Positions 16,936 to 64,000 of a DNA stretch of 64,000 nucleotides are shown piece after piece. The position numbers and the translations under genes were made by a program. The notes below the pieces were generated by a model, which was not told the origin of the DNA, ran no database searches, and was given only the letters and a program-made list of their open reading frames with translations. The first letter of the stretch is position 1. Every line of letters starts with the position of its first letter. The stretch covers positions 186,001 through 250,000 of IMG/VR virus record IMGVR_UViG_3300035212_003113; one strand, 5' to 3'.

Positions 16936-19227
16936 TCAGCTGCCTGAAGTCGGATGCGAACCCGGAAGGCCAAAGTTCGCTGTATAGCGAGCAACGCCTT
17001 TGGTTATGCGGAAATCATCTATATGCCCAAAATAGCCAGAAGTACCTGGATTTGTTGTGGAGACTGAGCCAATTACAAGTGGTTCGCCGTTAGATGGAAT
17101 TGTGCCACTTGCCGTACCAATTGCTGCAGAAGTGCCATTGACGTATAGGGTAAACGTGCCTCCACTCCTAACAAATGCCAGGTGCGTCCAAGTGTTTGCA
17201 GGGATAATATCACCAGTCGCCGCGCTTACGGCCCAACTGGTACCATTAGTTGTGGCATAGTAATACGCACGGTACGCATTAAGTGACGAGTTGAACTGCA
17301 AGAATCCTATAACACCTCCGTAAATACTAAGCGACTGTCTTTTACCAAACAGGTATTTTTGCGTCCCATTTGCAAGGCCGTTAATAGGATTAATCCACAT
17401 TTCAATTGTATAGTTTCCAGATCCAAATTCAAGACTCTGGCTTGAAGGAACAGATAGATAATCTCCAACGCCATCAAAATATAAACTCGAGCCGCCATAT
17501 CTGCTTTGTGCCGTGCTAATAAAGGCATTGCCGACTCGTGATACCGCAAAGGCATTGGCGCTGCTGTCAACAAACGACGTGCTGCCATTTGCCCCATCGG
17601 CCTTCATTAGCAGCGAGACGCTTGAGAAGTACGGGTCCGAGACTGGGTGGGAGCCCGGAGGCGTAAAGTTCGCAGTGTATCGGGCGATACCTTTGGTCAC
17701 ACGCAAGTCGTCTATGTAGCCGTTGAGGTCGTAGGTGTAGCCGGGGACAGATGTTCTGCCGACGAGCTGGGCGTGCGTTGTAGTTACATTCTGACTCGAC
17801 AGTGTTGTCGAGCCTATCAGTGCCCCGTTGAGAAAAAATCGCGTCAGAGTCCCTTGCCGAGATACTGCTGCGTGGTGCCACTGGTTTTGGGCAACCGTGG
17901 CAGGAGCGTTGAGCCCGCCCCCGCTACCGGACTGGTAGTTCTCAAAGCCTAGCCCAGTTCCGGTGGTTGACGAGTCGCCTAGTATGTAAAAGTTGTAGCC
18001 CATGGAGGATCCTGAAGGTGCAAAACATGAAAATATGGTCGCGATTCGCTGGTTGCCCGCACTCAGCGGCGAGTTTCCAGCGATAAAAAACCAGCACTCT
18101 ATGGTGAAGTTGCCAGTCCCGAAGCTGAACAGCGCGGAGTTTGCAATAGATAGGTTGTCCCCGCTGCCATCAAAATATGCACTGGATCCGCCGAACTTAC
18201 TCTGTGCGGTTCTAATCGCAGCATTACCAAGCCTTGAGATGGCAAGATTATTAGCGCTGCTATCGACAAACGACGTGCTGTTATTTGCCCCGTCAGCCTT
18301 AAGTAATAGCGAGACGTTTGCGAAGGATGCGTCCACAGCGTCCGCAACCGTAAGCGTGACCGTAGCTGCAGCAGAATTCGCCGTGCCATCGTTGACCCTG
18401 AAGGTAAAGCTGTCTGAGCCGGAATAGCCGCTATTCGGAGTATACGTCAGGCTTGGAGCCGTACCGGTCAAGGAGCCGTTGGCAGGATTCGTCACAACCG
18501 TGTACGTCAATGCGCTGCCTTCGACATCGCTGCCCGCCAGAGTTATTGCAGTTGCGGTGTCACGGTTCACCGATACGCTCTGGGCAGTAGCCGCAGGCGT
18601 GTCATTGACGGCAGTTACTGTGATGCTAACGGTAGCAGTAGAAGAGTTCACGTACCCGTCGTTAACGCGGAACGTAAAGCTGTCCGAGCCGTTGTAGTTC
18701 GCATTGGGCGTATAGACCAGGTTCGGGGCGTTACCCGTCAGCACGCCATTGCTTGGGCCGGCGACTACTGCGTAGGTCAGCGGATTTCCGTCGATATCAC
18801 TGCCTGTCAGGGTAATAGCAACGTAGCCGTCTTCGAGCACGCTGACGCTCTGGGCAGTAGCCTCAGGCGTGTCATTAACCGCAGTTACTGTTATTGAAAC
18901 AGTAGCCACGGCCGAATCTGCTGTACCATCATTAGCTTTGAACGTAAAGCTGTCCGAGCCGTTGTAGTTTGCGTTAGGCGTATAAGTCAGGCTCGGAGCG
19001 GAGCCACTTAGGACGCCATTAGTCGGGCCGTCAACTACTGTATAGGTCAGTATATCGCCATTTGCATCACTGGCAGTGAGCACGATGTTGGCCGCAGCAT
19101 CCTCAGATGTCGAGATGTTCTGGCCTACAACTACGGGAGCCACAGGGCCGGTACCAGGTAGAACTGTATCCGAAGTCTGAGAGGTCGATAGTATAGCTGG
19201 ACTTAATAAACCAAAATTACTGGGCAT
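16936..19227 (-). CDS. Virion surface/adhesin protein: three Ig-like (Big_9/cadherin-like) repeats plus two LamG/ConA-like domains
   Basis: 3x LTYTPN..Y.GSDSFTF..NDG; 2x VSLL.KADGAN.STSFVDSS...FDG.GD..., DD.R.TKG.ARYTANF; SD GGAG before ATG 19227. Confidence 0.85.
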   Translation of the reverse strand: MPSNFGLLSPAILSTSQTSDTVLPGTGPVAPVVVGQNISTSEDAAANIVLTASDANGDILTYTVVDGPTNGVLSGSAPSLTYTPNANYNGSDSFTFKANDGTADSAVATVSITVTAVNDTPEATAQSVSVLEDGYVAITLTGSDIDGNPLTYAVVAGPSNGVLTGNAPNLVYTPNANYNGSDSFTFRVNDGYVNSSTATVSITVTAVNDTPAATAQSVSVNRDTATAITLAGSDVEGSALTYTVVTNPANGSLTGTAPSLTYTPNSGYSGSDSFTFRVNDGTANSAAATVTLTVADAVDASFANVSLLLKADGANNSTSFVDSSANNLAISRLGNAAIRTAQSKFGGSSAYFDGSGDNLSIANSALFSFGTGNFTIECWFFIAGNSPLSAGNQRIATIFSCFAPSGSSMGYNFYILGDSSTTGTGLGFENYQSGSGGGLNAPATVAQNQWHHAAVSRQGTLTRFFLNGALIGSTTLSSQNVTTTHAQLVGRTSVPGYTYDLNGYIDDLRVTKGIARYTANFTPPGSHPVSDPYFSSVSLLMKADGANGSTSFVDSSANAFAVSRVGNAFISTAQSRYGGSSLYFDGVGDYLSVPSSQSLEFGSGNYTIEMWINPINGLANGTQKYLFGKRQSLSIYGGVIGFLQFNSSLNAYRAYYYATTNGTSWAVSAATGDIIPANTWTHLAFVRSGGTFTLYVNGTSAAIGTASGTIPSNGEPLVIGSVSTTNPGTSGYFGHIDDFRITKGVARYTANFGLPGSHPTSGS

Positions 19228-19305
19228 TAATTCTCCCTGGATCACTGGCCTTGCACGAATTTTGCTTGGCCATACTGCAGTATATTTAGTACCGTCGGCA
19301 GCTCC

Positions 19306-19325
19306 CGGCCGGGGTACCCCGGCCG
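19306..19325. repeat. Perfect 20-bp palindrome between divergent genes
   Basis: CGGCCGGGGTACCCCGGCCG equals its own reverse complement. Confidence 0.9.
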
Positions 19326-19376
19326 CAAAACCTATCATTGCAGGCGCATAGAGGTAATGTCAAAAGCCGGAGCACC

Positions 19377-19793
19377 ATGATTTTTTCGCTTTTCAAACGC
19401 GCCAGCCCAGCGGTAGCAGCCGGAGCAGTCATAATAGCAAACAACACTGGCAGGATACTGCTACAACTACGCGCACCATACCTCAGTGCCGGCGGAAAAT
19501 GGAGCCTGGTTGGCGGCGGAGTCGAGCCCGGAGAATCACCAGAACGCGCCATGTTTCGCGAAATCGCCGAAGAAACAGGCGCCGCATTAGAAGGCAAACC
19601 TCAGTACCTGCACACGTATGAGAAAAAAGACTTCAAATATCACAGCTACCTGCTGCGCATTCCAGAAGAGTTCGAACCAGTAGGCAACCAGGAGTCTGCC
19701 GAGCACCGGTGGGTAGATATTGACGACCTGCCCGAACCGCTTCATCCCGGGATGAAGCCCCTAATACCCATAATCCTTCTCGCAATAAAATAA
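19377..19793 (+). CDS. Nudix hydrolase
   Basis: Nudix box GGVEPGESPERAMFREIAEETG; SD GGAG before ATG 19377. Confidence 0.92.
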   Translation: MIFSLFKRASPAVAAGAVIIANNTGRILLQLRAPYLSAGGKWSLVGGGVEPGESPERAMFREIAEETGAALEGKPQYLHTYEKKDFKYHSYLLRIPEEFEPVGNQESAEHRWVDIDDLPEPLHPGMKPLIPIILLAIK

Positions 19794-19820
19794 AACAGCC
19801 AGAAACCCGTCCGGCTTGCG

Positions 19821-19852
19821 GCCCGCAGATTGTTTGCGGGCTTCTTCTTTTT
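19821..19852 (+). terminator. Probable intrinsic terminator
   Basis: GCCCGCAGA-ttg-TTTGCGGGC-TTCTTCTTTT. Confidence 0.65.
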
Positions 19853-20493: not shown

Positions 20494-20497
20494 ATTT

Positions 20498-21326: not shown

Positions 21327-21330
21327 CAAT

Positions 21331-30246: not shown

Positions 30247-30279
30247 AAGTCCGGCTTAAAATGCCGGATTTATGTTTTT
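30247..30279 (+). terminator. Hairpin/possible terminator before terL
   Basis: AAGTCCGGC-ttaaaat-GCCGGATTT followed by a T-rich tract. Confidence 0.5.
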
Positions 30280-30290
30280 GTGGAGCAAGC

Positions 30291-32150
30291 ATGGTAAGCC
30301 CTAAGAAAATAAAAGCTTTAACACCGAAAGACATTTTTGATGAAATCAAGAAAGATATCTCAAAAATAGATCCAGTTAGCTTTGCAGAAAATCATTTGAC
30401 AATAGACGGAAAGCCATTCGACTTATCGGGCTCGGGCTGGAAGTACATGGCGGAAATCTATCGGATGATATCTGCTCAGGTAGAGAATAAAGAGGCGCGC
30501 CCAATTGTTCTACTGAAGGGACGTCAGGTCGGTGCAACCATCATGGCAGGGGTGCTCAGCCTACACATGGGTAGCTCTGGCCTATATGGTATTGAATCCG
30601 GCAAACCCCCGATCCGAGTCATGCATGTTTTTCCTGATCTGAAGCGCTGCGGCGTGTATGCAAAGGATATTCTTGCAAGTCTAATTAGCGGTGCTAAAGA
30701 GAATTATATCTCAAGGCGTGCGCTTAAGGTTGCAAAGGTCGTAGATCTGGAGGACACGCAGACCCAGAAGAATTTTGTCGGCATGAACAAGATTCGTATC
30801 GACTCCATAGGGAAGTCAGGCGACCGTATTCGCGGTAGCACGCAGGATGTTTTGCTTTATGATGAAATCCAAGACATGGGGCGCACTGCCATAGAGAATA
30901 CTCTCAAGGTTCTAACTGCAACCCCATACGGTGCTCCTACTAAGGGGGTACAGGTATTCTTTGGAACGCCTAAGCATGCAGGCTCATACTTCTGGTCTCT
31001 CTGGGAAGACTCTGATCAGCGATTTTATCAACTGCGCTGCAAGCATTGCGACCACCATTTCTTTCTCTATAATCTTGAAAATGATGACTGGAACGAGACT
31101 TGGGTAAAAGAGCAACTAGTAAAGTGTCCTTCCTGCCTAAAGACTCAGGACAAGAGAGAGGCAGTAGACCTGGGAAGGTGGGTCGCAACTAAGCCGTTTA
31201 ATGCAAAGGGCGAGCCGCAGAAATTCGTAGGATATCATTTTAACATGATGCTTAGCCCTCTCTTCACAAAAGAGAATGTGCTTGAGTACTGGCCGCAGCA
31301 TAATAAAAATGCATCCGAGCGGGCATGGAGAAACGAGACCAAGGGGCAATTTTACTCTGCTAGCGAAGTACCGCTTACCTTGGAAGAGGTTTATGCAAAT
31401 GCTCTCGACGAGAGTCGCGGCGTTGCAAAAAGTATATCCTCTCCAGCCGGCAAGAGTTACTTCCTTGGGATGGACTGGGGTGAGAAGGTTGAATCTGATT
31501 CAGACCTAGAGGCGAAACGCGGCAAATCTTTCACCTGTGCTGTCATACTATCAGTGGATCACACAGGCGTTCTCACTATAGAGAATGCGGTTCGCCTAAA
31601 AAAGAATGACCCGGATTACAAGATGAATGTTGTCCGCAAACTAATGTCTGATTTTCACATAGATCAGGCGGCAGCAGACTTTTATTACGGCAACGACTTT
31701 GTTCGACTGGTTCAGCATAACGAGGGCCTAAAGGATAAATTCTTGGGCTGCACAAATCTCAGTAACTCTAAGCGAGCTTTCTCTTATGATGAGAAAGACC
31801 TAATGGTAGGCGTGAACAAGGACCAGGTCCTTGATGAGATATTTGCTCTATTTAAGAGAGGGCGTATAAAAATACCGGCCAAAGGCGACTCACTAGAGCT
31901 ACTGAGTTGGCTAGTTGATCATATTACGTCCATGGAAACACACACCAAGACAAAAGACGGCATTGTGCTAAAAACATATAAAAAGGGCGTAATACAGAAC
32001 GACGGATTAATGGCACTAATGTACGCATATACAGCGTACAAATTCATGGTAACTCGCAAATTCAGCGAATTTGCAGTCGAGGGTGTAAATAAAAAACGCC
32101 AAGAAGAGGTAGTTGTTCCAGTTGTGGGCTACATTCCGCGCATGCACTGA
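30291..32150 (+). CDS. terL: Terminase large subunit (lambda gpA-like)
   Basis: Walker A KGRQVGAT, Walker B LLYDEIQD, motif III FGTP, CxxC...CxxC, nuclease GMDWG and NDGLMA; SD GGAG before ATG 30291. Confidence 0.9.
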   Translation: MVSPKKIKALTPKDIFDEIKKDISKIDPVSFAENHLTIDGKPFDLSGSGWKYMAEIYRMISAQVENKEARPIVLLKGRQVGATIMAGVLSLHMGSSGLYGIESGKPPIRVMHVFPDLKRCGVYAKDILASLISGAKENYISRRALKVAKVVDLEDTQTQKNFVGMNKIRIDSIGKSGDRIRGSTQDVLLYDEIQDMGRTAIENTLKVLTATPYGAPTKGVQVFFGTPKHAGSYFWSLWEDSDQRFYQLRCKHCDHHFFLYNLENDDWNETWVKEQLVKCPSCLKTQDKREAVDLGRWVATKPFNAKGEPQKFVGYHFNMMLSPLFTKENVLEYWPQHNKNASERAWRNETKGQFYSASEVPLTLEEVYANALDESRGVAKSISSPAGKSYFLGMDWGEKVESDSDLEAKRGKSFTCAVILSVDHTGVLTIENAVRLKKNDPDYKMNVVRKLMSDFHIDQAAADFYYGNDFVRLVQHNEGLKDKFLGCTNLSNSKRAFSYDEKDLMVGVNKDQVLDEIFALFKRGRIKIPAKGDSLELLSWLVDHITSMETHTKTKDGIVLKTYKKGVIQNDGLMALMYAYTAYKFMVTRKFSEFAVEGVNKKRQEEVVVPVVGYIPRMH

Positions 32151-32158
32151 GGTAGGAT

Positions 32159-37748: not shown

Positions 37749-37885
37749 TAATTAAATACGGGACATCCGAGGCCGCCGAAGTAATCGATGCGAAGAATAT
37801 TCCTTCGTGGGTGACTCGCGATCCGCCGAAATCCGAGCAGGATGGCGTGACGGAGTCTGACGATAATACAGAGGAAAAAGAATGA
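37745..37885 (+). CDS. 46-aa micro-protein absent from the ORF track
   Basis: MIIKYGTSEAAEVIDAKNIPSWVTRDPPKSEQDGVTESDDNTEEKE; ATGA overlaps at both ends, SD AAGGA. Confidence 0.65.
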   Translation: MIIKYGTSEAAEVIDAKNIPSWVTRDPPKSEQDGVTESDDNTEEKE

Positions 37886-49116: not shown

Positions 49117-49767
49117 ATGGCTCTATATCCTGTTCAGCCCGGCATCCAACCACTAGGTCTTTTCGACGTTCTCGACACCGAGCTCGCCACCATCAAGGGC
49201 GGCGAGGTTATGACCCTCGGTTCAGCTGCTACCACCAACTCAGGCACGGAGACCGCTGCTCCCGACGTTCTCGACGGCTACACCTTCGAGGCGACCGCCA
49301 GCCGTCCAGTTGCTCAGAAGGCTTCGCTCGCAGCGAACGCTTTCGTTGCTCTCGCCGATGAGGGCACTGGTCCCGACTACTTCACCATGCTCGGCACGGT
49401 AGTAGGCGGCAAGACCGGTCTCGTTGTCAGCGGCGGCGCCGTCCTCGGCCCACACACCTCGACCGCTTCGGGCAAGGTCACCCTATGGGACAAGCCCGGT
49501 CTCTACGAGGTTACCCTCGATGCAGTAGCTTCGGACTTCGCCAGCACGGCTCTCGTTCCTGGTAAAGTTCTCGGCTTCACCGCCGCGGGCTTGCTGCAGC
49601 GTAACGGCGGCGTCGGCGCTCTCGCCGACAGCGGCTGCGCAGTATTCGTCGAGTTCTCGCAGTCGTCCAGCCTCGTCACCACGCCAGCTCGTCTGGTCGG
49701 CGGTGCGAATGCTCCTGACCGCGTCAAGATCATGTTCCTCGGCGCTGCTGGCAAGGCTCTGACCTGA
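49117..49767 (+). CDS. Abundant capsid decoration/cement-like protein
   Basis: Codon bias similar to the MCP, own promoter motif and terminator, SGKVTLW; position near MCP. Confidence 0.6.
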   Translation: MALYPVQPGIQPLGLFDVLDTELATIKGGEVMTLGSAATTNSGTETAAPDVLDGYTFEATASRPVAQKASLAANAFVALADEGTGPDYFTMLGTVVGGKTGLVVSGGAVLGPHTSTASGKVTLWDKPGLYEVTLDAVASDFASTALVPGKVLGFTAAGLLQRNGGVGALADSGCAVFVEFSQSSSLVTTPARLVGGANAPDRVKIMFLGAAGKALT

Positions 49768-49907: not shown

Positions 49908-51917
49908 ATGCCATATGTTTGTGATGTTCGTAGAGATAACAAGTTAACGGTCATAGAGGTAGATGGGCGTCTGTATATCGAAAGTCAAGAGTACACCCCA
50001 ACAAATCTTGCTCCAATTGCTTTTTCACAGGGCCCTACTACGTGGCCCCCCGCTGCATCGAGTGCCTCTGGTAGATTTCCTGCTCAACAGCTATCCCTTT
50101 CACGAGTATATTCTCGCGGCTACACCGGTCTTTACCCATTTACTGATACAGATGGCGAGGCCTATGACACAACTCGTACGATGTGCGGACTGAGCGTACT
50201 TGGTCCAGTTGTCTATTCTTCGGCTTACGAGAGGTTCTATTGCTGGGGCAATAGCTCGTCTGCAAACAACGCCGTATCGTCATTTGACGATTCATTTAGA
50301 ATGGTTTCTGGTAGCCTTGGGACAATAGGTGGCACTTATTCTGTTTATGGCTTCTTTTTGCCTTCACAGAATAACAGATGGTTTGCCATAGCGCCTCATG
50401 GGCCAGGAATCGGAGCTGATGGAACTAGCGCTCTGACTGCAGCCACGGTAGGGTCTTTGCTGGAAAGCGGCGTAGTGTCTACCAATTCAGCATCGAGCTG
50501 GTGGCATCAGCTACATGTTCCCTACCTCGGTACCGATTGGCTGGTATCAGTTCTATCTCCTTGGCAGAATGGATTTAGTTCCGTGGTAGCATATAACGAC
50601 GTTAGAATTGCTTATTATAATCGCAATACAGGGGCTGGTACTGACCTCGGTATATGGCTGGACGTTGCCACTACGTTTCTGCCGAGTGCCGGGCTGTCCG
50701 CATTCTCAACGCTCGGGTGCTCTCCCAGTAATCACATAAGGACGAGCACTGATGAAGTTTATTTCTATTTCCCTATTCTTAGTAGTACCAATGAGACAAC
50801 AACTGGTCTTCCTGGCTTTAAGGTAGCCATCGGCACGATCAGCGGGTTAAATTCCACCCCTACTCGTACGCCGATCAGTACTGCCTATACAATAAGTGCA
50901 GTCGATACCGTAGCCAATACCATTACGACAAGTGCGGATGCTCCGAACTTTTCAGTTGTGCGCTTTACTGCAACAGGAGTAGGAGCGGCTGTTCCGCCGC
51001 CACTTGAGACTGGGCGCGACTACTGGACGATCAGACAGTCGGCCAATATAAGCAAGATCGCAACGACCTATCAAAATGCGGTCGATGGCTACTCTGTAGA
51101 TCTTACTGGTGCTGGCGCCGGAACTCGCGTGGCCACTGCATTTGAATTCCTGACGCTAGATGTCAATTCGATTTCATCAGGTGGAGCTGCAGTCACAAAC
51201 AGGAACGCAATTCCAGGCACTATTACTCGTATGTGGGTATTCGAGGATGCCGGCATCAAATACCTATGCATGGGCGTCTCTGAAGGCGGCACCCGAGCGA
51301 CGCTTAACTCCAGCGTCATGAATCTTTATTTGTGGCGTCTAGATAGCAAGCGCCAGGCAACATTCCTGCAGAAGGTCACGGCAGGCAGCGCTGGTCGCGT
51401 AAGAAGCTTCTTTACGCTTGATGAGGCGCAGAAGCGGATAGCCATGATTTACGATGATCGCATAATGTTCTACCAGTGGAACCCATCTACAAACTGGACC
51501 TTTCAGTCAACACAGGATGTGCAGGTGCAGGACGTAGGTGTGGATACGCTTGGTCGCACATGGGTAACAAACCGCGGAACATATGCTGGTCCAATGGCAG
51601 GTATTCCGGCTAACCAGCAGCAACTGTATGTGTTTGAGCCATCTGGCGCTGCGGCAAACATAGTGGTTTCATTTGCGCAGAATGCTTATACGTACAGCGG
51701 GACCCCTGTTGCCTCAAATATAATCGTAAATGCCTATGACACAACTGGCGCCCGCGTCGCACTTGGCGTAACGCTTACTCGCGACTCTACGAATTTCTCA
51801 TTTACTGCCGACGCACCGTCAGCATCAGTAGTTACGAGTACTTCGGCCGATACTCTTGTGCCGATCTCTATATTCTCTACCGGATTGCTTTCCGTACTTG
51901 CTGTGCCAGGAACATGA
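49908..51917 (+). CDS. Beta-rich putative virion surface/receptor-binding protein
   Basis: Ser/Thr/aromatic-rich; VRFT...PPPLETGRDYW...KIATT...VDLTGAG module typical of phage fibres. Confidence 0.6.
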   Translation: MPYVCDVRRDNKLTVIEVDGRLYIESQEYTPTNLAPIAFSQGPTTWPPAASSASGRFPAQQLSLSRVYSRGYTGLYPFTDTDGEAYDTTRTMCGLSVLGPVVYSSAYERFYCWGNSSSANNAVSSFDDSFRMVSGSLGTIGGTYSVYGFFLPSQNNRWFAIAPHGPGIGADGTSALTAATVGSLLESGVVSTNSASSWWHQLHVPYLGTDWLVSVLSPWQNGFSSVVAYNDVRIAYYNRNTGAGTDLGIWLDVATTFLPSAGLSAFSTLGCSPSNHIRTSTDEVYFYFPILSSTNETTTGLPGFKVAIGTISGLNSTPTRTPISTAYTISAVDTVANTITTSADAPNFSVVRFTATGVGAAVPPPLETGRDYWTIRQSANISKIATTYQNAVDGYSVDLTGAGAGTRVATAFEFLTLDVNSISSGGAAVTNRNAIPGTITRMWVFEDAGIKYLCMGVSEGGTRATLNSSVMNLYLWRLDSKRQATFLQKVTAGSAGRVRSFFTLDEAQKRIAMIYDDRIMFYQWNPSTNWTFQSTQDVQVQDVGVDTLGRTWVTNRGTYAGPMAGIPANQQQLYVFEPSGAAANIVVSFAQNAYTYSGTPVASNIIVNAYDTTGARVALGVTLTRDSTNFSFTADAPSASVVTSTSADTLVPISIFSTGLLSVLAVPGT

Positions 51918-52614: not shown

Positions 52615-53619
52615 ATGTCAAATCTTTTTGATAACTCAGGCGAGCTCGGTGGTCTGACCACCCGCGACGCGCTGAAGAGCCTCGTTCGCATTGCCAAGGT
52701 TCTAGAGGAGGGCATGCCCTCGAACGCCGTCGCCGCTGGTCGTCCTTCGACCACCGAGACGCAGCGTGATGAGCTCGTCCGCCAGGCCATCCTCGATCAG
52801 GGCGGCAAGGTCGCTCTCGCCCAGGCCATGGCGCTCCCAATCCGCCGCAACCTTGATTACTCGGGCGTTGCTCGCCGCGGCCTCGTCGTTGACGAGCTCG
52901 CCACCGGCGTTCTCCCGCTTTACGAGCGCGATATCGATGTCGCTGCATTCGTAATCTCGGCCAATGGCGCAGTTCCAGAGAGCCCCGTCCGTGGCGACCG
53001 CGTATTCGTTCCAGAGTTCGACATCGCCTGTCACCCACTCGTTCGTATCCGTGAGGCTCGCCAACGCCGCTTCAACGTCATCGAGCGCACCGTTCAGAAG
53101 GCCAAGCAGGAGATCGCCGCGACCGAGGACGCTAACTTCTTCGCCGCTCTCGACTTCGCTGCTGACGCCGCCCTCGGTGGTGAGAACACCGCCCAGGTTC
53201 TCGGTGCCCGCATCTCGCGCGCCGACATGGTTGAGATCAAGTCAGAGGTCGATCAGTGGGACTTGCTCACCAGCAAGTTCTTCATGAACATCCGCGACTT
53301 CCAGGACCTGCTCCTCTGGACGTCACAGGGTGGTACGTCGGCTGCCGAGGTTGATCCGGTAACGCACCGCGAGATCCTCCAGACCGGTCTCTACGCCAAG
53401 CTGTTCACCGCTGACATCATCGTCAGCAAGCTCGTTCCCTTCGGCAGCGTCTTCGGCTGCGCAGAGCCCGACATGGTCGGCGTAATGCCAATTCGCCAGA
53501 ACGTCGAAGTCGTTCCGAACGACAAGATGGATCGCCTCAGCCTCGGCTGGACGGTATTCGAGACCATCGGCATCGGCGTAGTCAACGCTCGCGGCGTTGC
53601 AGTCGGTCGCAAGGCCTGA
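52615..53619 (+). CDS. Major capsid protein (HK97 fold)
   Basis: LAQAMALPIRRNLDYSG..R..L.VD.L..G..P.Y, VPEFDIA, AKQEIAATEDANF, GWTVFETIGIGVVNARG; strongest codon bias in the window; SD GGAG. Confidence 0.85.
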   Translation: MSNLFDNSGELGGLTTRDALKSLVRIAKVLEEGMPSNAVAAGRPSTTETQRDELVRQAILDQGGKVALAQAMALPIRRNLDYSGVARRGLVVDELATGVLPLYERDIDVAAFVISANGAVPESPVRGDRVFVPEFDIACHPLVRIREARQRRFNVIERTVQKAKQEIAATEDANFFAALDFAADAALGGENTAQVLGARISRADMVEIKSEVDQWDLLTSKFFMNIRDFQDLLLWTSQGGTSAAEVDPVTHREILQTGLYAKLFTADIIVSKLVPFGSVFGCAEPDMVGVMPIRQNVEVVPNDKMDRLSLGWTVFETIGIGVVNARGVAVGRKA

Positions 53620-53671: not shown

Positions 53672-53736
53672 GCGCCGACTGCTGCATATGGCTCGAGCAG
53701 TATAGAATTCATGTGAGGCATGCTCCAGGAGCGCAC

Positions 53737-54090
53737 GTGAATTTTCTAGATTTTATTTTTCGCAAGTACGAGGAACCGGTTGAGCCAGCCGATGGCTATC
53801 TTACTCACTCACCTGTAACACATTCTATAATGCGTCCAGGCGTCTATGAGTGCTTTGGACGAGAAGTAAAGATCCTTGGATTCGACCAGGCCGGGCAGCT
53901 CTTTGCCACCTTATATATGTGCCACAAGGGTACCGGAGAATGCTCAGAATGGCGTACGCTGGGTTTCCATAGGATGTCCAGCGGAGATGGTGACGAGACG
54001 TGGGACTGTCTGATAGATAAGTGCGCAATCGTCCTTCACGCTGCTGAGCAAGGTGGAAGGCTTAAAGTAAAGATAGAGGTAGATAAATGA
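53737..54090 (+). CDS. Hypothetical protein
   Basis: SD AGGAG before GTG 53737; coupled to thyA. Confidence 0.6.
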   Translation: MNFLDFIFRKYEEPVEPADGYLTHSPVTHSIMRPGVYECFGREVKILGFDQAGQLFATLYMCHKGTGECSEWRTLGFHRMSSGDGDETWDCLIDKCAIVLHAAEQGGRLKVKIEVDK

Positions 54091-56966: not shown

Positions 56967-58346
56967 ATGACCTTTAGACCATATACTGGTAAGGTCAGGC
57001 TTGGCGACTCGGATATCTTCCTAGATATTTCCGATTTTTCGCAGCCTGAATATGATGGATATGTACTTTCTCGTAGTGGAGAGACAATTGTCGCCACTCT
57101 TATCGGCCAGAGCAAACTGGCACTGTCAGAGCCTCAGAATCCAAGTGATGCCGCAACGAAGGCATACGTAGATTCAGTTGTCGCCTCGGTTGATCCGGCT
57201 GGCGACGTAGGCCAGATCCAGTTTAACCTGGATAACGACAACATGGGCGCCAGCCCGAATTTTGCATGGAATGACTCTACCAGCACCCTGAGTGTTTCTG
57301 GTAAGGTCTCAGTAAGTGGCGAATTCGTAATTGCCGAGAGCGTAAACCTGCCAGCCGGTCAGTCCGGTGCAGGCAAGCTGGCAGCCAAGGATAACGGAGC
57401 CCTGTACTTCGTTGATTCCGACGGCTACTCGCACTACGTAATGCCCGATGGCCTCGTGACGCTATCTGGTCTTTCGCCTGTTGTTGACTTCTCGCCAGAG
57501 CTGCCCTCATTCAGAACGATCAACCTTTCGGGCACAACTGCTTTCTCCGCTTCCAACTACGGCAGCGGCCGCGCAGTCAGCGTAAGAATGGTTGCTGGCG
57601 CTAGCACAAGAGCAATCAGTTTTCCAAATGGTTGGAAGTGGCTTGGCGGCGGCAGTGGTCCAACCTCTGTCCCAGCAAACAAGGTCGCGATGGTCTCGGT
57701 CGTATCCTATGGATCCGATGAGTCTGATGTAGTTGCCGGTTGGTCGTACACTGACTCTGCGGTTATCACTGGTAACGCCACCACTGGTCAAATAGCATTT
57801 TTCAATGGTGATCGTAATATTTCAGGCGAAACAAACCTGCAGTGGGATGCAGCTAATGATCGCCTGCTTATCGGCAGCGTAGCATCGCCAGCAGCAAGTC
57901 TGCATGTAGCAGGCACAGTTCAGGTCGATGGTACAGCGTCTTTCACTCAGTCGCCTTCTATGGGCGGCAACAGAGTTACGGATGTTGCTTCGCCTTCGGC
58001 AGATACTGATGCTGTTAACAAGAGCTATGTAGAGTCAAGAAGGCTATATAGCATACAGATGGTAACGGCAGACGCGTCTATTGAAGCCGACAAGGATCTT
58101 GTGTTCGTGGGCGGCGCTGGTAGTTCAGTACTTAGACTGCCTCTCGCCACTGTCTCGAATGCAGGCAAGGCCATTACGATCAAGAAGACGAATACAGGAG
58201 AAGCAGATCTCGTAGGCACTCAGATTGGCTCAGGCCAGTCGGTCGACGGGACGCAGGTCGACGGAACCTCCGTCTACTACAACATTTTCCTGCAGAATGA
58301 AACTGTCACGCTTGTTAGCGATGGCAGCAACTGGTTCGTAATCTGA
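56967..58346 (+). CDS. Fibre protein 1 (MTFRPY family)
   Basis: Shared N-terminus, DAATKAYVD/DAVNKSYV neck motifs, shared C-terminal domain ending SDGSNWFVI. Confidence 0.8.
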   Translation: MTFRPYTGKVRLGDSDIFLDISDFSQPEYDGYVLSRSGETIVATLIGQSKLALSEPQNPSDAATKAYVDSVVASVDPAGDVGQIQFNLDNDNMGASPNFAWNDSTSTLSVSGKVSVSGEFVIAESVNLPAGQSGAGKLAAKDNGALYFVDSDGYSHYVMPDGLVTLSGLSPVVDFSPELPSFRTINLSGTTAFSASNYGSGRAVSVRMVAGASTRAISFPNGWKWLGGGSGPTSVPANKVAMVSVVSYGSDESDVVAGWSYTDSAVITGNATTGQIAFFNGDRNISGETNLQWDAANDRLLIGSVASPAASLHVAGTVQVDGTASFTQSPSMGGNRVTDVASPSADTDAVNKSYVESRRLYSIQMVTADASIEADKDLVFVGGAGSSVLRLPLATVSNAGKAITIKKTNTGEADLVGTQIGSGQSVDGTQVDGTSVYYNIFLQNETVTLVSDGSNWFVI

Positions 58347-58466: not shown

Positions 58467-61229
58467 ATGACTTTTAGACCATATGCCGGAAAAGTCCGTC
58501 TTGGTGATTCGGACGTTTTCCTTGATATCTCAGAGCTGCAGGACGGGTATGTCCTTTCGCGCAGCGGCAGCGAAGTCGTTGCCACCCTAATCGGCCAGGA
58601 CAAGCTGGCCCTCGGCACCCCTTCACGCGGCTCAGATGCTGCGACGAAGGAGTACGTTGACGGCCTGGTTGATTCCGAAGAGGCCCGCGCCATCGCCGCA
58701 GAGTCTGCAATCCAGGCAGAAGTTGACGCAGAGGAAGTTGCCCGCGCAGCTGGTGACACGACTCTCACCACGAACCTCAATGCAGAGATTGCCCGCGCAA
58801 CCTCCGCAGAGGCCGGCCTGCAGAGCCAGATCAGCAGCATCGTCTCAAACGTTGACCCAGCTGCTCTCGACTCACTGACCGAGATCGTTGATGCTTTCCA
58901 GGGTGCCGACGGTTACATCCTCGATTCACTCGCCTCGCTCTCGACCGGTTCAAACTCGGCCCTCCAGGCAGAGATCAACCGTGCTACCGCTGCAGAAGTT
59001 GCCCTCCAGGCAGCTCTTGATGCAGAAGTAGTTGCTCGTGGCGCCGATGTTGATGCAGAAGAGGCTCGTGCAATGGCAGCAGAGGCTGATCTTGCCTCTG
59101 ACCTCTCCGACGAGGAAGCTGCCCGCATTGCAGGCGATGCAGCTCTTTCTGCCAGCCTTGCTGCAGAGGTTGCTCGTGCGACCGCCGCTGAGGGTGTCCT
59201 CACGACCAATCTCAGCAATGAGGTTGCCCGCGCAACCGCCGCTGAGGGCGTTCTGCAGAGCAACATCGATGCAGAAGAGGCCCGTGCTCTCGCCGCAGAG
59301 GCCGGTCTCCAGAGCGACATCGACGCAGAGGAGGCTCGTGCTCTTGCTGCTGAAGGCGCTCTTCAGAGCGAGCTTGATGCAGAAGAGGCCCGTGCTCTCT
59401 CGGCCGAAGGCGTTCTTCAGGACAATATCGATGCAGAGCAATCCGCTCGTGTATCGGCAGACAGCGTAGAGCAGGCTGCTCGTATCGCTGGCGACGCAGC
59501 ACTTCAGGCTGCTATCGATGCAGAGGCCGCTGCCCGCGCCGCTGGCGACCTTTCGCTCCAGGGCGATCTTACCTCCGAGGTAAATCGCGCAACTGCTGCA
59601 GAGGCCGCTCTGCAGGCAGAGATTGACGCAGAGGAAGTCCGCGCCGCTGCCGCAGAGGCAACGCTGACCTCCAACCTTGCAGCAGAGATTGCTCGTGCAA
59701 CGGCCGCAGAGGGCGTTCTTACGACCAACCTCAGCAACGAGGTTTCACGCGCAACTGCCGCCGAGACCGCTCTCCAGGGCGAGATCGACGCAGAAGAGGT
59801 CCGTGCTCTCGCAGCCGAGGCCGCCATTCAGGCAGAAGTCGATGCAGAAGAGGTTCGTGCCCTCGCTGCAGAGGCCGGTCTCCAGGGCGAGATTGACGCA
59901 GAGGAAGTTGCCCGCGCAGCTGGCGACACGACTCTCACCACGAACCTCAATGCAGAGATTGCCCGTGCAACCTCCGCAGAGGCCGGTCTGCAGAGCCAGA
60001 TCAGCAGCATCGTTTCGAACGTTGATCCAGCTGCTCTTGACTCGCTGACCGAGATCGTTGATGCCTTCCAGGGTGCCGACGGCTACATTCTCGACTCACT
60101 CGCCGCACTGTCGTCCGGTTCAAACTCCGCCCTCCAGGCAGAGATCAACCGTGCAACGGCTGCAGAGGTAGCTCTCCAGGCATCAATTGATGCCGAGGTC
60201 TCAGCCCGCACTGCAGACGTCAATGCAGAGGAGAGCCGCGCTCTCGCTGCAGAGGCAACCCTCCAGAGCAACATCGACGCAGAGGCAGTTGCCCGCGCAG
60301 CAGATGTTGATGCAGAAGAGGCTCGTGCACTTGCCGCCGAGGCAGGTCTCCAGAGCGATATCGATGGTGAAGAGGCCCGCGCTCTCGCCGCCGAAGGCGT
60401 GCTCCAGGGCAACATTGATGCAGAAGTTGCTCGCGCAACCGCTGCAGAGGGTGTTCTTACGACCAACCTCTCCAACGAGGTTTCCCGTGCAACGGCCGCT
60501 GAGGGCGTTCTTCAGGGCAACATCGACTCCGAGATTGCTCGCGCTCTTGCCGCAGAGGATGCACTCGATGCAGCCATCACTGCAGAAGAGACCCGCGCAA
60601 TGGCAGCCGAGTCCGCAGAGGCTGCTGCTCGTGCCGCTCAGGACACCGTCCTCGAGGGCATGATCAACACCGAGACCGTGAATCGCCAGGCTGATGTCGA
60701 TGCAGAAGAGGCCCGCGCTCTTGCTGCAGAGGCAGTTGTTCAGGCCGCCGTTGATGCAGAGGTTGCTCGCGCAACCGCCGCAGAAGGCGTCCTCACGACC
60801 AACCTGAGCAACGAGGTTTCCCGTGCAACCGCTGCAGAGACCGCTCTTCAGAGTGAGATTGATGCAGAGGAAGTTGCTCGCGCAGCAGCAGACTCGGCCC
60901 TTGATGGTCGCGTCGGCTCGCTCGAGGCAACCCGCGCTCGCATGTCGGGCGTCCAGAGCGTTTCGGCTGATGCAGGCGTTGCTGGCGACAAGGACATTGT
61001 CCTCGTCACCTGCTCGTCGGTTGACGTTGTTGTCACGCTGCCCGCAGCATCGTCTGCTTCCGGCCGCATGATCTTCATCAAGAAGATCGATGCCACCAGC
61101 CACGATGTCGTTGTCAAGTCGGTCTCCGGCTCCATCGACGGTACGGCTGCCAGCACCGGCAAGCACATCTACCTGCAGTACGAAGCAATGACCGTTGTTT
61201 CGGATGGCTCGAACTGGTACATCGTCTGA
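58467..61229 (+). CDS. Fibre protein 2: long Ala/Glu coiled-coil stalk
   Basis: Shared N-terminus, 18-residue repeats (AEGVLTTNLSNEVARATA), two DPAALDSLTEIVDAF necks, shared C-terminal domain. Confidence 0.85.
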   Translation: MTFRPYAGKVRLGDSDVFLDISELQDGYVLSRSGSEVVATLIGQDKLALGTPSRGSDAATKEYVDGLVDSEEARAIAAESAIQAEVDAEEVARAAGDTTLTTNLNAEIARATSAEAGLQSQISSIVSNVDPAALDSLTEIVDAFQGADGYILDSLASLSTGSNSALQAEINRATAAEVALQAALDAEVVARGADVDAEEARAMAAEADLASDLSDEEAARIAGDAALSASLAAEVARATAAEGVLTTNLSNEVARATAAEGVLQSNIDAEEARALAAEAGLQSDIDAEEARALAAEGALQSELDAEEARALSAEGVLQDNIDAEQSARVSADSVEQAARIAGDAALQAAIDAEAAARAAGDLSLQGDLTSEVNRATAAEAALQAEIDAEEVRAAAAEATLTSNLAAEIARATAAEGVLTTNLSNEVSRATAAETALQGEIDAEEVRALAAEAAIQAEVDAEEVRALAAEAGLQGEIDAEEVARAAGDTTLTTNLNAEIARATSAEAGLQSQISSIVSNVDPAALDSLTEIVDAFQGADGYILDSLAALSSGSNSALQAEINRATAAEVALQASIDAEVSARTADVNAEESRALAAEATLQSNIDAEAVARAADVDAEEARALAAEAGLQSDIDGEEARALAAEGVLQGNIDAEVARATAAEGVLTTNLSNEVSRATAAEGVLQGNIDSEIARALAAEDALDAAITAEETRAMAAESAEAAARAAQDTVLEGMINTETVNRQADVDAEEARALAAEAVVQAAVDAEVARATAAEGVLTTNLSNEVSRATAAETALQSEIDAEEVARAAADSALDGRVGSLEATRARMSGVQSVSADAGVAGDKDIVLVTCSSVDVVVTLPAASSASGRMIFIKKIDATSHDVVVKSVSGSIDGTAASTGKHIYLQYEAMTVVSDGSNWYIV
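58723..60182 (+). repeat. Near-identical ~290-bp direct repeat (58723-59012 and 59893-60182)
   Basis: Colinear at offset 1170 with mostly synonymous differences; related third copy near 62640-62870. Confidence 0.9.
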
Positions 61230-61256
61230 TAATTAGCTATTAAAGCTAATTAAGGC

Positions 61257-61286
61257 CCGGCCCCAGAGATGGGGCCGGTTCTTTTT
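61257..61286 (+). terminator. Intrinsic terminator
   Basis: CCGGCCCCA-gaga-TGGGGCCGG-TTCTTTTT. Confidence 0.9.
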
Positions 61287-61427
61287 CTATTAAAAAACTG
61301 GCGTTCTTGCGCGCTAGGATAGCATTTGGCGTTTCAGCGAGCTCGATGCTAGGGTACACTCTCTTGGTATGCAGAAGTCCCATGGCAAGAGTAAGTGAAA
61401 TCATAAAGGTAAAGCAGGAGTAAAAAG

Positions 61428-64000
61428 ATGACTTTTAGACCGTATGCTGGCAAGGTACGCCTTGGCAACACAGATGTGTTTCTTGATATCTCAGAGCTGC
61501 AGGATGGCTATGTGCTATCGCGCGAAGGCTCAGAAATCGTCGCAACTCTTATCGGGCAGGATAAGCTTAGCCTAAGTGCTCCGCTTAATGATTCCGATGC
61601 AGCGACCAAAGCCTATGTTGACGCGGCCCTTTCTGGCGCTGTTTCAGATGGATATGTCGATCTTGAGGCTGAGCGCATTGCCCGCATTGCTGCGGACAGC
61701 TCGCTACAGGGCCAGATTGACAACATTGTATCAAATCTCGACCCGGCTGCGCTGGACTCGCTAACTGAAATCGTTGCAGCTTTCCAGGGAGCCGACGGCG
61801 ACCTGAGCACGTCCATCAGCTCGCTTGCAGCATCTGCGAGCTCTGCTCTGGCTGCAGAGACTGCAGAGCGCATTGCTCAAGACGGTTATATTTCTGCAGA
61901 TTTGGATGCAGAGATTGCCCGCGCCACGGCAGCCGAGGCCGCACTGGAAGCAGAATTGGCCACAGAAGAGGCTCGTGCTATTGCTGCTGAGGCACTGCTC
62001 CAGGCCGCGGTTGACGCAGAGGCTGCTCGTGCAGCTGCCGCAGAGGCAGCTCTGGCTGACGATATTGCCGCAGAACAGGCTGCTCGTATTGCTGGTGATG
62101 CAGCACTCGCCGCAGATCTTGATACTGAAGAGGCTCGCGCCCTCGCCGCAGAGGCAGATCTTGCTGCAGATATTACTGCAGAAGAGAACGCTCGCCAGGC
62201 CGCAGATCTTGCTGAAACCGCTGCCCGTATTGCTGGTGACGAGAGCCTTCAGGCGGCTCTGACGAGTGAGATAAATGATCGCCTTGCCGCAGACCTTGCT
62301 GTTCAGGCCGACCTGACCTCCGAGGTTAGCCGTGCTCTTGCTGCAGAAGCCGCAATTCAGGCAGAAGTTGATGCAGAAGAGGTAGCCCGTGCTGCCGGTG
62401 ACGCACAGCTGACGTCTGATCTCGCTGACGAGGTTTCCCGTGCAACCGCTGCAGAGACCGCTCTCCAGGGCGAGATCGACGCAGAGGAGCTTGCTCGCGC
62501 TGCTGCTGATACCGCTCTTGAGGCAGATATCGCAGCAGAAGAGGTACGCGCTCTGGCTGCGGAGGCAGCTCTACAGAGCGACCTCTCGGACGAGACCGCT
62601 GCCCGCATTGCTGGTGACGCAACACTGACTGCAGACCTGTCTGCAGAAGTCGTTCGTGCAACGGCTGCAGAGGCCGGCCTACAGAGCCAGATCAGCAGCA
62701 TTATCTCGAACGTGGATCCTGCGGCACTCGACTCCCTTACGGAGATCGTTGACGCATTCCAGGGTGCAGATGGTTATATTCTAGATTCGCTCGCTGCGCT
62801 TTCAAGCGGCACGAACTCTGCTCTCCAGGCAGAGATTGTTCGCGCAACTGCGGCAGAAGTTGCCCTGCAGGCAGCTATCGATGCAGAGGCTGCAGCTCGC
62901 GCAGCAGATGTTGACGCAGAAGAGGCCCGTGCTCTTGCGGCAGAAGTTGCCCTCCAGGCAGCCATTGATGCCGAGGCAGTAGCCCGCGCCGCTGACGTTG
63001 ATGCAGAGGAAGTTCGTGCCCTTGCTGCAGAGGCAGCACTGGCAGCCGATATTGCCACGGAAACTGCTCGTGCCACAGCGGCCGAGGCGGTTCTGACGGC
63101 AGATCTCGCTACAGAGGTTGCTCGCGCCACGGCAGCCGAAGGCGTTCTGACGTCAAATCTTAACTCCGAGATTGCTCGCGCTCTTGCTGCAGAGGATGCA
63201 CTCGACGCGGCAATCGCTGCCGAGACTGCTCGTGCAACGGCAGCAGAAGGCACGCTGACCGCCAATCTAAATAGCGAAATTATACGCGCCACGGCCGCCG
63301 AGCTGGCTCTTGATAATGCAATAGATGCAGAGGCAGCCGAGCGCGCAGCGCAGGACGGTTATCTTGCTGCAGATATTGCCGCAGAGGAGGCTCGTGCTCT
63401 GGCTGCTGAGGCCGCAGAGGCAGCTGCCCGCGCCGCCGCTGACGACGCGCTCGATGCTCGCCTTGACGGCATGGAGTCTGAGCGTAGCCAGATGGTACTG
63501 TTTGAGACGGCACCACAGGTTTATGCAGACGGTTCGCCTGGCTCGATTGATCCGATTGATGTCTCGCGTCTTCTGTTGTCGCCACCGCAGTCGCCTGTTC
63601 GCAATGGCTGGTATTTCCGCAACGCGGTAGCTAGCTCGAAGATCAACTGGTACCTGTTCGACGGTCTTGCGAATCCGGTAAAGGTCGGCAGCACGGCTGC
63701 GCCTGACCTTAATGGCTATATGGTCGTCACTGTTGACGGCAATGGTCTTTCGACCGGTCAAAACGTTCCAGTCTCTGGCCGTCCTTGGTTCTCGATGTAC
63801 GCAGGCACAAATATTGCTGCATTCCTGAATCGCGTAACCTTCCAGGTTCCATCGACAACCTCTCTCCCGGCCAAGACAAAGGTGATTCTTTACTTTGGTC
63901 AGGATCCGGGTGCCACGGTATATCCCGCCGATCAGACTCTGCAGCGCATTGCAATGACCTCTGTTTCTACCTCGGGTTCGCCTACGGCCGGAACGCAGGT
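61428..64000 (+). CDS. Fibre protein 3 (3'-truncated; absent from the ORF track)
   Basis: SD AGGAG, MTFRPYAGKVRLGNTDVFLDISELQDGY, coiled-coil stalk, then a different beta domain (GWYFRN...KINWYLFDG); open to the window edge. Confidence 0.9.
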   Translation, partial: MTFRPYAGKVRLGNTDVFLDISELQDGYVLSREGSEIVATLIGQDKLSLSAPLNDSDAATKAYVDAALSGAVSDGYVDLEAERIARIAADSSLQGQIDNIVSNLDPAALDSLTEIVAAFQGADGDLSTSISSLAASASSALAAETAERIAQDGYISADLDAEIARATAAEAALEAELATEEARAIAAEALLQAAVDAEAARAAAAEAALADDIAAEQAARIAGDAALAADLDTEEARALAAEADLAADITAEENARQAADLAETAARIAGDESLQAALTSEINDRLAADLAVQADLTSEVSRALAAEAAIQAEVDAEEVARAAGDAQLTSDLADEVSRATAAETALQGEIDAEELARAAADTALEADIAAEEVRALAAEAALQSDLSDETAARIAGDATLTADLSAEVVRATAAEAGLQSQISSIISNVDPAALDSLTEIVDAFQGADGYILDSLAALSSGTNSALQAEIVRATAAEVALQAAIDAEAAARAADVDAEEARALAAEVALQAAIDAEAVARAADVDAEEVRALAAEAALAADIATETARATAAEAVLTADLATEVARATAAEGVLTSNLNSEIARALAAEDALDAAIAAETARATAAEGTLTANLNSEIIRATAAELALDNAIDAEAAERAAQDGYLAADIAAEEARALAAEAAEAAARAAADDALDARLDGMESERSQMVLFETAPQVYADGSPGSIDPIDVSRLLLSPPQSPVRNGWYFRNAVASSKINWYLFDGLANPVKVGSTAAPDLNGYMVVTVDGNGLSTGQNVPVSGRPWFSMYAGTNIAAFLNRVTFQVPSTTSLPAKTKVILYFGQDPGATVYPADQTLQRIAMTSVSTSGSPTAGTQ

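Follow-up and report, generated by a model that had tools for sequence, protein, structure and literature searches.

Phage-encoded glycosyltransferases are reported to modify virion structural proteins, made in the cytoplasm, of mycobacteriophages, which are siphoviruses, the glycans sitting at the C-termini of capsid and tail-tube subunits, with shielding of the particle as the proposed benefit (Freeman et al. 2023, Cell Host Microbe, as cited in PMC12619734). O-glycans on tyrosine are known in the repetitive, exposed S-layer proteins of Paenibacillus and Thermoanaerobacter, a linkage described as chemically more stable, although only a few sites per protein are known and no consensus motif is given (PMC2943079). 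Short sequons such as N-x-S/T and the Bacteroidetes D-(S/T)-(A/I/L/V/M/T) are scattered over many unrelated surface proteins and have Asn, Ser or Thr as acceptors, whereas the HxH motifs of the T4 long tail fibre tip gp37 bind iron on the trimer axis.

In comparison, the locus investigated here carries the exact tripeptide Asp-Gly-Tyr (DGY), by far the most over-represented three-residue word in the tail, baseplate and fibre proteins of a whole clade of phage-G-like jumbo phages, next to a conserved glycosyltransferase gene cluster. DGY looks like a previously undescribed modification site, tyrosine glycosylation being the most likely, though tentative, reading. A literature search returned no paper on a DGY motif in phages.

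DGY tripeptides within the window

We, first, investigated the occurrence of DGY in the window, i.e. the whole stretch of 64,000 nucleotides analysed, which is part of a 371,675-bp jumbo phage genome (hereafter G000) whose major capsid protein is 45% identical to that of Bacillus phage G (gp27). A nucleotide search of the terminase/portal region against cultured phages gave no match. Gene calls are a longest-ORF set and not a curated annotation. The features considered are the following.

56967..58346 (+), fibre 1, 459 aa; DGY codons at 57054-57062 (aa 30) and 57420-57428 (aa 152); weak tail-fibre PHROG hits on the DAVNK-type neck motif.
58467..61229 (+), fibre 2, 920 aa, a coiled-coil stalk with 18-aa and 29-aa repeats (54-nt and 87-nt tandem repeats); DGY codons at 58542-58550 (aa 26), 58908-58916 (aa 148) and 60078-60086 (aa 538); phrog_13589, E 1.6e-65.
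61428..64000 (+), fibre 3, running off the window (1003 aa in full, ending at window-equivalent 64439); DGY codons at 61503, 61647, 61881, 62769 and 63354 (aa 26, 74, 152, 448 and 643); phrog_13589, E 4.1e-31, the profile matching, as in fibre 2, over the repeat stalk.
16936..19338 (-), Ig/LamG protein, 800 aa, with 3 Big_9/cadherin-like Ig repeats (PF17963, 1.9e-54) and 2 Laminin_G_3 domains (PF13385, 2.2e-36); DGY codons at 18823-18831 (aa 170) and 18652-18660 (aa 227), both in Ig repeat 2; PHROGs labelled baseplate wedge or virion structural protein.
49117..49767 (+), p216, a probable capsid decoration or cement protein; DGY at 49273-49281 (aa 53-55).
49908..51917 (+), p669, matching only PHROGs of unknown function; one DGY at 51084-51092 (aa 393).
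12763..13497 (+), 244-aa ORF; one DGY at 12985-12993 (aa 75), compatible with the background rate.
53713..54090 (+), 125-aa ORF just downstream of the capsid gene; one DGY at 53791-53799 (aa 27).
30261..34000 (+), large terminase (30261-32150) and portal (32159-34000), assigned by PHROG hits; no DGY.
52615..53619 (+), major capsid protein, 334 aa; no DGY.

The original prediction had counted DGY in the three fibres, the Ig/LamG protein and the genes at 49117 and 49908, and its observation is confirmed, every count being correct, although the single DGY in each of 12763-13497 and 53713-54090 had been missed. It had also claimed that every tyrosine of the two coiled-coil stalks is in DGY. The only stalk tyrosines are Tyr150 and Tyr540 in fibre 2 and Tyr76, 154, 450 and 645 in fibre 3, and all six are in DGY, Tyr64 (KEYVD / KAYVD) lying in the neck before the stalk. 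The replacements of the repeat consensus are as it had described: FQGADGDL stands against FQGADGYIL, ARIAGDAAL against ERIAQDGYI and ERAAQDGYL and, in the Ig repeats, EDAA and RDTA against EDGY and NDGT against NDGY.

The six proteins hold 14 DGY against 0.53 expected from their own composition. Paralogy explains part of this, as 8 of the 10 DGY of the three fibres fall into three paralogous positions (the three N-terminal sites are one site, the three FQGADGY sites are one and the two AQDGY sites are one). Nine independent sites nevertheless remain (Poisson P about 6e-9), so that the vanishing of the enrichment after collapsing paralogs, which had been set beforehand as a refuting outcome, is not observed.

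Over-representation of DGY in a clade of jumbo phages

Genome-wide, G000 contains 57 DGY against 16.7 (composition) or 22.8 (Markov, z = 7.2) expected, rank 2-3 of all tripeptides, and 48-52 remain after collapsing similar flanks. In the related genomes, we found 92 against 17 in G001 (rank 1), 55 against 18 in G002, 41 against 16 in G003, 20 against 2.3 in G006, 70 against 3.7 in G007 and 19 against 2.3 in G008, with a GC content ranging from 0.31 to 0.53. Six related genomes pooled give 335 against 75 (z = 30), the top of all 8,000 tripeptides, and 47 capsid-gene flanks give 224 against 31. Overall, genomes with GC from 0.24 to 0.54 all show the enrichment. By contrast, 80 random IMG/VR loci hold 18 DGY against 30 expected (0.6x), and the proteins of 800 aa or more in that set 3 against 4.9.

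The signal lies in the protein, as the coding frame of G000 holds 57 copies and the other five frames 1-9, with mixed codons (GAY GGN TAY). The motif is exact, NGY (1.2x), EGY (0.6x), DGF (1.1x), DGW (1.1x), DAY (0.8x) and DSY (0.7x) not being enriched. DG is generally common in turns, and DGT and DGS are about 1.5-2x in random viral proteins too. However, these controls refute an artefact of paralogous repeats, of amino-acid composition, of a DNA-level motif or of a generic property of beta-rich phage structural proteins, a reading to which we give practically no weight.

The exactness for Asp (not Glu or Asn) and for Tyr (not Phe or Trp) points to chemistry at a carboxylate and a phenol, and could also indicate another covalent chemistry, i.e. 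Tyr sulfation, phosphorylation, nucleotidylation, oxidation to DOPA or a cross-link, or Asp-Gly succinimide/isoaspartate formation tuned by the neighbouring Tyr, Asp-Gly being the sequence most prone to isomerisation. This reading is unlikely, since no sulfotransferase, kinase, tyrosinase or PIMT-like gene turned up among the genes scanned, albeit without a systematic search for them, and the only conserved enzymes at the locus are glycan-related.

Next, the distribution among proteins was analysed. The tail and fibre blocks of G000 hold 46 DGY against 5.1 and the rest of the genome 11 against 11.6, the head and packaging block holding none. The major capsid protein has no DGY in G000 or in any of its 7 orthologs, a conserved 1,579-aa protein has none in any lineage, and the terminase and portal orthologs are almost all DGY-free, one terminase ortholog, in G006, having a single DGY. 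DGY is depleted in the last 30% of proteins. The "virion surface" of the original prediction is roughly right, but the enrichment is mainly in tail, baseplate and fibre proteins. The DGY of p216 is invariant in all 7 orthologs at 41-75% identity. The AF2 model of p216 is only moderately confident (pLDDT 62), with DGY in a low-confidence loop, and all its top Foldseek hits are capsid decoration proteins but are not significant (E >= 0.27).

The sites turn over between lineages. Only 25-67% of the G000 sites are kept in orthologs, lineage-specific DGY align to DGF, DGI, DGT and the like, and tandem DGYDDGYSDGYSDGY occurs in locus L308. The motif occurs in unrelated contexts, namely coiled-coil breaks, Ig repeats, dockerin-like Ca loops and N-terminal tails. 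Fibre 2 gave no match in distant relatives, and the fibre N-terminal domain was found only in G008, a relative whose capsid protein is 99% identical.

A structural or metal-binding unit was considered, in which Asp and Tyr at positions i and i+2, held by a Gly with unusual backbone angles, would supply hard-oxygen ligands (for Fe3+, Ca2+ or similar) or a fixed turn/cap geometry in trimeric fibres and baseplate proteins, by analogy with T4 gp37. The motif is indeed concentrated in fibre and baseplate proteins and, in the p944 family, DGY tyrosines are more conserved than other tyrosines (0.84 against 0.63). Moreover, a profile of this family hits type I dockerins (E 1.3e-4 to 1e-3), with loops reading GDVNGDG(Y/I)ID and DGDGY(V/I)T, several DGY lying inside dockerin/EF-hand-like GDVNGDGY(I/V)T calcium loops, but this covers only a few of the DGY sites. 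As judged from the sequences and the p216 model, DGY also lies at Ca-loop position 7 and in folds with no trimer axis, namely Ig repeat loops, the extreme N-termini of proteins and a low-confidence loop of p216. The quick turnover and the tandem DGYDGY arrays also speak against this reading, a pure turn motif should also favour NGY and DGF, and unrelated phage structural proteins do not use DGY. We consider it rather unlikely, though the least unlikely of the alternatives.

DGY could also be a docking motif, bound non-covalently by a small decoration or shielding protein, a fibre-assembly chaperone or, as a repeated low-affinity contact, a host surface polymer. It is a short, exact, multivalent and clustered motif (26% of consecutive DGYs lie within 20 aa), present at many N-termini, where fibres attach, and specific to certain protein classes. 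However, no candidate partner was identified, a three-residue epitope is very small for specific protein binding, and nothing in this model explains the glycan genes described below, which makes it unlikely.

A GT4 glycosyltransferase gene at the edge of the tail genes

A predicted GT4 (GT-B fold, retaining) glycosyltransferase is encoded directly downstream of the DGY-rich giant tail genes (G000 313990-315153, outside the window). It matches PF13692 (48.7 bits, cut-off 27) and PF00534 (46.5 bits, cut-off 26.4), i.e. Glycos_transf_1 / Glyco_trans_1_4 above the curated cut-offs, and phrog_2170 "glycosyltransferase" (E 1.8e-24). Its EX7E motif, described for GT4 in PMC2943079, reads E266-GWGMPFL-E274, and both Glu are invariant in a 4-genome alignment, so that it looks catalytically intact. 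A PDB sequence search gave only generic GT4 enzymes, the nearest solved relatives being MshA-like and sucrose-phosphate-synthase-like enzymes acting on small molecules. No GT4 enzyme that glycosylates tyrosine is known to us, and a complex prediction of the L308 GT4 ortholog with a DGY-rich domain gave no answer, which is no evidence either way. A search of 185,579 prokaryote genomes with a GT4 profile returned 3 loci, none informative, one being a 383-kb contig binned as a Chitinophagales MAG.

The gene sits at the same boundary in G000-G003. In 59 IMG/VR loci, the 10 kb upstream of it hold 703 DGY against 42.7 expected and the 10 kb downstream 24 against 27.8, and in the upstream proteins 41% of all DG dipeptides are followed by Y. 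Further glycan-synthesis genes usually follow. In G001 these are 3 GT2 genes, a GT11, an epimerase/dehydratase and an FkbM methyltransferase, and 70 of 74 loci have at least one such gene. DGY density rises with their number (rho 0.56), a correlation that is not corrected for phylogeny, and the GT4 adjacency, being one conserved synteny within one clade, amounts to a single evolutionary observation. G000 itself has only the GT4 at the tail module, with no GT2 (PF00535) above threshold in its genome.

In phage G (NC_023719), the nearest cultured relative, the large tail-fibre-region proteins gp420-431 hold 14 DGY against 2.2 expected, while the rest of the genome is at expectation (21 against 19.8). 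However, phage G has no homolog of the GT4, and its annotated glucosyltransferases sit among nucleotide-metabolism genes and look like DNA-modifying enzymes. This enrichment without the tail-module GT would also fit a structural role or another covalent chemistry. Particle proteomics of phage G exist (PMC12484599), in which we found no report of a search for modifications.

A putative modification site compared with described systems

The interpretation given in the original prediction is partly supported. Selection for the motif itself, inferred there from its recurrence in unrelated folds, is strongly supported, while glycosylation, the most specific of its three mechanisms, has circumstantial support only, and cross-linking or binding of a decoration protein are neither supported nor excluded. 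We propose that DGY is a short linear motif under positive selection in the externally exposed tail, baseplate and fibre proteins, and in one probable capsid decoration protein, that most likely serves as a sequon for a phage-encoded post-translational modification. In this view, the GT4, probably made late together with the tail proteins, would recognise Asp-Gly-Tyr on folded or folding virion proteins in the cytoplasm and attach a first sugar to the Tyr hydroxyl, which in most relatives the neighbouring GT2, GT11, epimerase and methyltransferase gene products would extend to an oligosaccharide, giving the exposed parts of the virion a glycan coat. The exactness of the motif, its restriction to the clade and to certain protein classes, its turnover and the gene neighbourhood rest on the data presented here, whereas that the tyrosine is modified at all, that the modification is a sugar and that the GT4 is the enzyme are inferred, without mass-spectrometric or other direct evidence. 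A phage-encoded Tyr O-glycosylation sequon is the most likely of the readings, but it remains tentative and falls short of even odds.

It is possible, although more doubtful than not, that DGY is the first defined tyrosine O-glycosylation sequon and the first protein-glycosylation sequon of tailed phages, by which a large, environmentally widespread clade of jumbo phages would coat its tail fibres, baseplate and capsid decoration protein with lineage-specific glycans, using a cytoplasmic GT4 plus a variable set of extending enzymes, with sites gained and lost as in the glycan shields of animal viruses. If DGY is a modification site, it would give a simple sequence rule for finding modified virion proteins in hundreds of uncultured jumbo phages and a portable three-residue tag and enzyme pair for tyrosine glycoengineering, and would show that bacterial viruses evolve glycan shields by sowing sequons, as animal viruses do. 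Even if the mechanism is otherwise, an exact tripeptide that is the single most over-represented word in the structural proteome of a whole phage clade, and under-represented elsewhere, demands a specific biochemical explanation.

As in mycobacteriophages, phage-encoded glycosyltransferases would here modify virion proteins made in the cytoplasm, but the capsid protein has no DGY in 8 genomes, DGY is depleted in the last 30% of proteins instead of lying at C-termini, the carriers are tail, baseplate and fibre proteins of jumbo myovirus-like phages, and the putative acceptor is Tyr in an exact three-residue motif. Like the short bacterial and viral sequons, DGY is a three-residue word with one acidic position, scattered over many unrelated surface proteins and quickly gained and lost, the density of such words mattering more than their exact position. 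Transfer to those sequons is periplasmic or in the ER, while DGY would need a cytoplasmic enzyme acting on Tyr, for which no sequon has been defined, to our knowledge. S-layer proteins share the O-glycan on Tyr that is proposed here, but their glycans are built on a lipid carrier and transferred by an oligosaccharyltransferase outside the cytoplasm. The T4 gp37 motif is likewise a short i, i+2 motif repeated along a phage fibre, but its middle residue is free, its ligands are His and its sites lie on the trimer axis, whereas DGY also occurs in non-fibrous domains and in loops. Finally, phage G shares the related capsid protein and the DGY-rich tail-fibre region, with a weaker enrichment (6x against 9-19x) and without the tail-module GT4.

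Genomic setting of the fibre genes

The 371,675-bp virus record (G000), of which bases 186001-250000 were analyzed here, carries direct terminal repeats. In this region, we identified the following packaging and head genes (window positions):

30261-32150, large terminase (629 aa)
32159-34000, portal
37882-41691, 1269-aa protein with a prohead-protease domain
52615-53619, major capsid protein

The nearest cultured relative is Bacillus phage G, whose capsid protein is 45% identical, and IMG/VR holds dozens of relatives of 200-470 kb. In the two closest relatives, G008 and G006, the large terminase is 976-980 aa long, which suggests an intein or other insertion in those genomes.

Downstream of the capsid gene lie three paralogous fibre genes. 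Two of them, fibres 2 and 3 (58467-64000), have long Ala/Glu-rich stalks built from 54-nt (18-aa) and 87-nt (29-aa) tandem repeats (DAEEARALAAEAxLQxxI). An 18-residue period is five turns of a helix and suggests an unusually straight, non-supercoiled bundle. G008 (IMGVR_UViG_3300032235_001256, loci L252-L255), whose capsid protein is 99% identical, carries four fibre genes with N-terminal domains only 28-66% identical to those of the window, two of them sitting about 35 kb upstream of the capsid gene. Fibre cassettes are therefore swapped between near-identical phages.

Enrichment of the DGY tripeptide in the genome and its clade

We, first, re-examined the original prediction, which had reported DGY twice in fibre 1, three times in fibre 2, five times in the visible part of fibre 3, twice in the Ig/LamG protein and once each in the proteins starting at 49117 and 49908, and had described it as replacing the repeat consensus (RIAQDGYI and RAAQDGYL for RIAGDAAL, ADGYI for ADGDL and, in Ig repeat 2, EDGY and NDGY for EDAA and NDGT). 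This observation is correct in all its counts and replacement examples. The six proteins hold 14 DGY against 0.53 expected from their own composition. Collapsing paralogous repeats had been named beforehand as the step that could abolish the enrichment. The three fibres share an N-terminal DGY, three copies of FQGADGYIL belong to one duplicated segment and the two AQDGY sites are alike, which leaves nine independent sites, still about 17 times the expectation (P about 6e-9). All six tyrosines in the two coiled-coil stalks are in DGY, as had been proposed.

ORFs were then called over the whole genome as longest-ORF approximations, and all tripeptides were counted. DGY occurs 57 times against 16.7 expected from composition and 22.8 from a first-order Markov model, and ranks second or third of 8,000 tripeptides, behind only the start-of-protein word MKL. 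After merging sites with similar flanks, 48-52 remain. WYR (21 against 2.7 expected) and HRD (28 against 8) are also strongly over-represented in this genome. The DGY codons are a mixture of GAT/GAC, GGN and TAT/TAC, and the same DNA pattern occurs only 1-9 times in each of the other five frames, so the signal is in the protein. It is also local. The blocks at 235-314 kb and 142-157 kb, which hold fibre-like, baseplate-like and giant proteins, carry 46 DGY against 5.1, while the rest of the genome is at expectation (11 against 11.6) and the packaging and head block at 208-235 kb has none.

In the same way, we examined three large relatives and three fragments, with GC content ranging from 0.31 to 0.53. 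DGY is the top or second tripeptide in G001 (92 against 17), G002 (55 against 18), G006 (20 against 2.3), G007 (70 against 3.7) and G008 (19 against 2.3), and is clearly enriched in G003 (41 against 16). In the first 400 kb of G003, TGP (124 against 25), CPQ, PQC, QCG and GPQ are hugely over-represented as well, which points to a large collagen-like or Cys-rich repeat protein family in that relative. Pooled, the DGY count is 335 against 75 (z = 30), twice the z of any homopolymer word, although the related genomes are not independent samples. The flanks of 47 capsid genes give 224 against 31. In phage G, the enrichment is confined to gp420-431, large unannotated proteins next to an XkdX gene, with 14 against 2.2, while the rest of that genome gives 21 against 19.8.

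As a control, a single sample of 80 random IMG/VR loci (228,000 aa) was drawn with an arbitrary 14-mer. DGY is under-represented there (18 against 30), also among proteins of 400 aa or more and of 800 aa or more. Every single-residue variant is near 1x in the clade (NGY 1.2, EGY 0.6, DGF 1.1, DGW 1.1, DAY 0.8, DSY 0.7), and so are the permutations, whereas a generic turn preference would favour NGY and DGF too.

Distribution and turnover of the sites among virion proteins

The proteins that carry DGY are the same in all lineages. Portal, capsid protein, the protease-domain protein, a 1579-aa protein and a 709-aa protein have no DGY in any ortholog, and neither does the terminase, apart from a single DGY in the G006 ortholog. 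In contrast, p216, p666, p857, p944, p1529 and the gp6-like wedge protein have DGY in every ortholog. The p216 protein (window 49117-49767) keeps its DGY in all seven orthologs at 41-75% identity. The motif lies in a low-confidence loop of the predicted model, of which the fold matches, though not significant, are all capsid decoration or cement proteins.

Elsewhere, the sites turn over. Only 25-67% of G000 sites are DGY in orthologs, about the same as ordinary tyrosines, and lineage-specific DGY align to DGF, DGI, DGT, DES and others. In a 57-member family of a baseplate protein (G000 311131-313965, corresponding to 8724-11555 of locus L020, and 56 orthologs, alignment A2; model pLDDT 78, with phi812 baseplate proteins as best fold matches), DGY fills nine columns in one subgroup. 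These include position 7 of dockerin-like calcium loops and arrays such as RYDGYFDC-DGYVRLDGY, and one member has DGYDDGYSDGYSDGY. The family carries paired dockerin/EF-hand-like calcium loops (GDVNGDGxID ... DGDGYVT), and cohesin-dockerin-type modules in a phage baseplate are unusual. Tyrosines in DGY are more conserved in this family (0.84) than other tyrosines (0.63). The flanks show only mild preferences, Pro, Lys and Arg being rare after the motif, and Asp and Glu rare before it.

A glycosyltransferase gene at the boundary of the tail module and the candidate modification

The gene immediately downstream of the last DGY-bearing tail gene, G000 313990-315153, encodes a GT-B/GT4 glycosyltransferase with an intact EX7E motif, and homologs sit at the same boundary in G001-G003. 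A tubulin/TubZ-like GTPase gene (PF00091, E 1.8e-14; G000 317857-319203, corresponding to L020:15450-16793) lies about 2.7 kb further downstream, and PhuZ-like spindles are known from other jumbo phages. A profile search of IMG/VR with the GT4 returned 74 loci, all on large phage contigs. In the 59 loci with full flanks, the 10 kb upstream of the GT4, encoding co-oriented proteins of 970-2245 aa, holds 703 DGY against 42.7, while the 10 kb downstream holds 24 against 27.8. The tail-module GT4 is also carried by a 383-kb contig binned into a Chitinophagales MAG (JAIXLO010000160.1, 383,427 bp), probably a clade member mis-binned with, or co-binned with, its host, which hints at Bacteroidota hosts for part of the clade.

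In G001, the GT4 is followed by three GT2 genes, a GT11 fucosyltransferase-type gene, an NAD-dependent sugar epimerase/dehydratase and an FkbM methyltransferase. At least one homolog of these genes is present in 70 of the 74 loci, and the DGY density upstream rises with their number (Spearman 0.56, not corrected for shared ancestry). G000 also has a second glycosyltransferase pair at 128-130 kb (128004-129800, L010:12059-13823), a GT4 'in conflict systems' (PF20706) and a GT2-like gene. However, this pair lies among helicase, AAA ATPase, ligase and dUTPase genes, and more likely serves DNA modification or a counter-defence role than virion modification.

The original prediction had taken the recurrence of DGY in unrelated folds as suggesting selection for the motif itself, and had inferred a site for phage-encoded tyrosine modification, cross-linking or binding of a decoration protein. 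This interpretation is supported in part. That DGY is a specifically selected functional motif is held with very high confidence, whereas the reading of a glycosylation sequon remains tentative. Several features fit a modification sequon best. The motif is an exact three-residue word with a carboxylate and a phenol, scattered over unrelated folds of presumably exposed virion proteins, often created by one substitution next to an existing DG, sometimes arrayed in tandem and turning over between lineages, and a glycan-synthesis cluster is conserved at its edge. The counts, their distribution and the gene neighbourhood are what the analysis establishes, while a modification of the tyrosine, its nature as a sugar and the role of the GT4 are inferred from sequence alone. 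Three things argue against or limit the reading of tyrosine O-glycosylation by the GT4: there is no direct evidence of modification, the synteny is one evolutionary event, and phage G keeps a 6-fold enrichment although it lacks this GT4 and its glucosyltransferases look DNA-directed. A structural or metal-binding unit, a docking motif, or a different chemistry at Tyr or Asp therefore remain live rivals. Tyrosine O-glycosylation by the GT4 is the most concrete candidate. Tyr-linked glycans are known in S-layers (PMC2943079), and phage-encoded virion glycosylation is known in mycobacteriophages (cited in PMC12619734).
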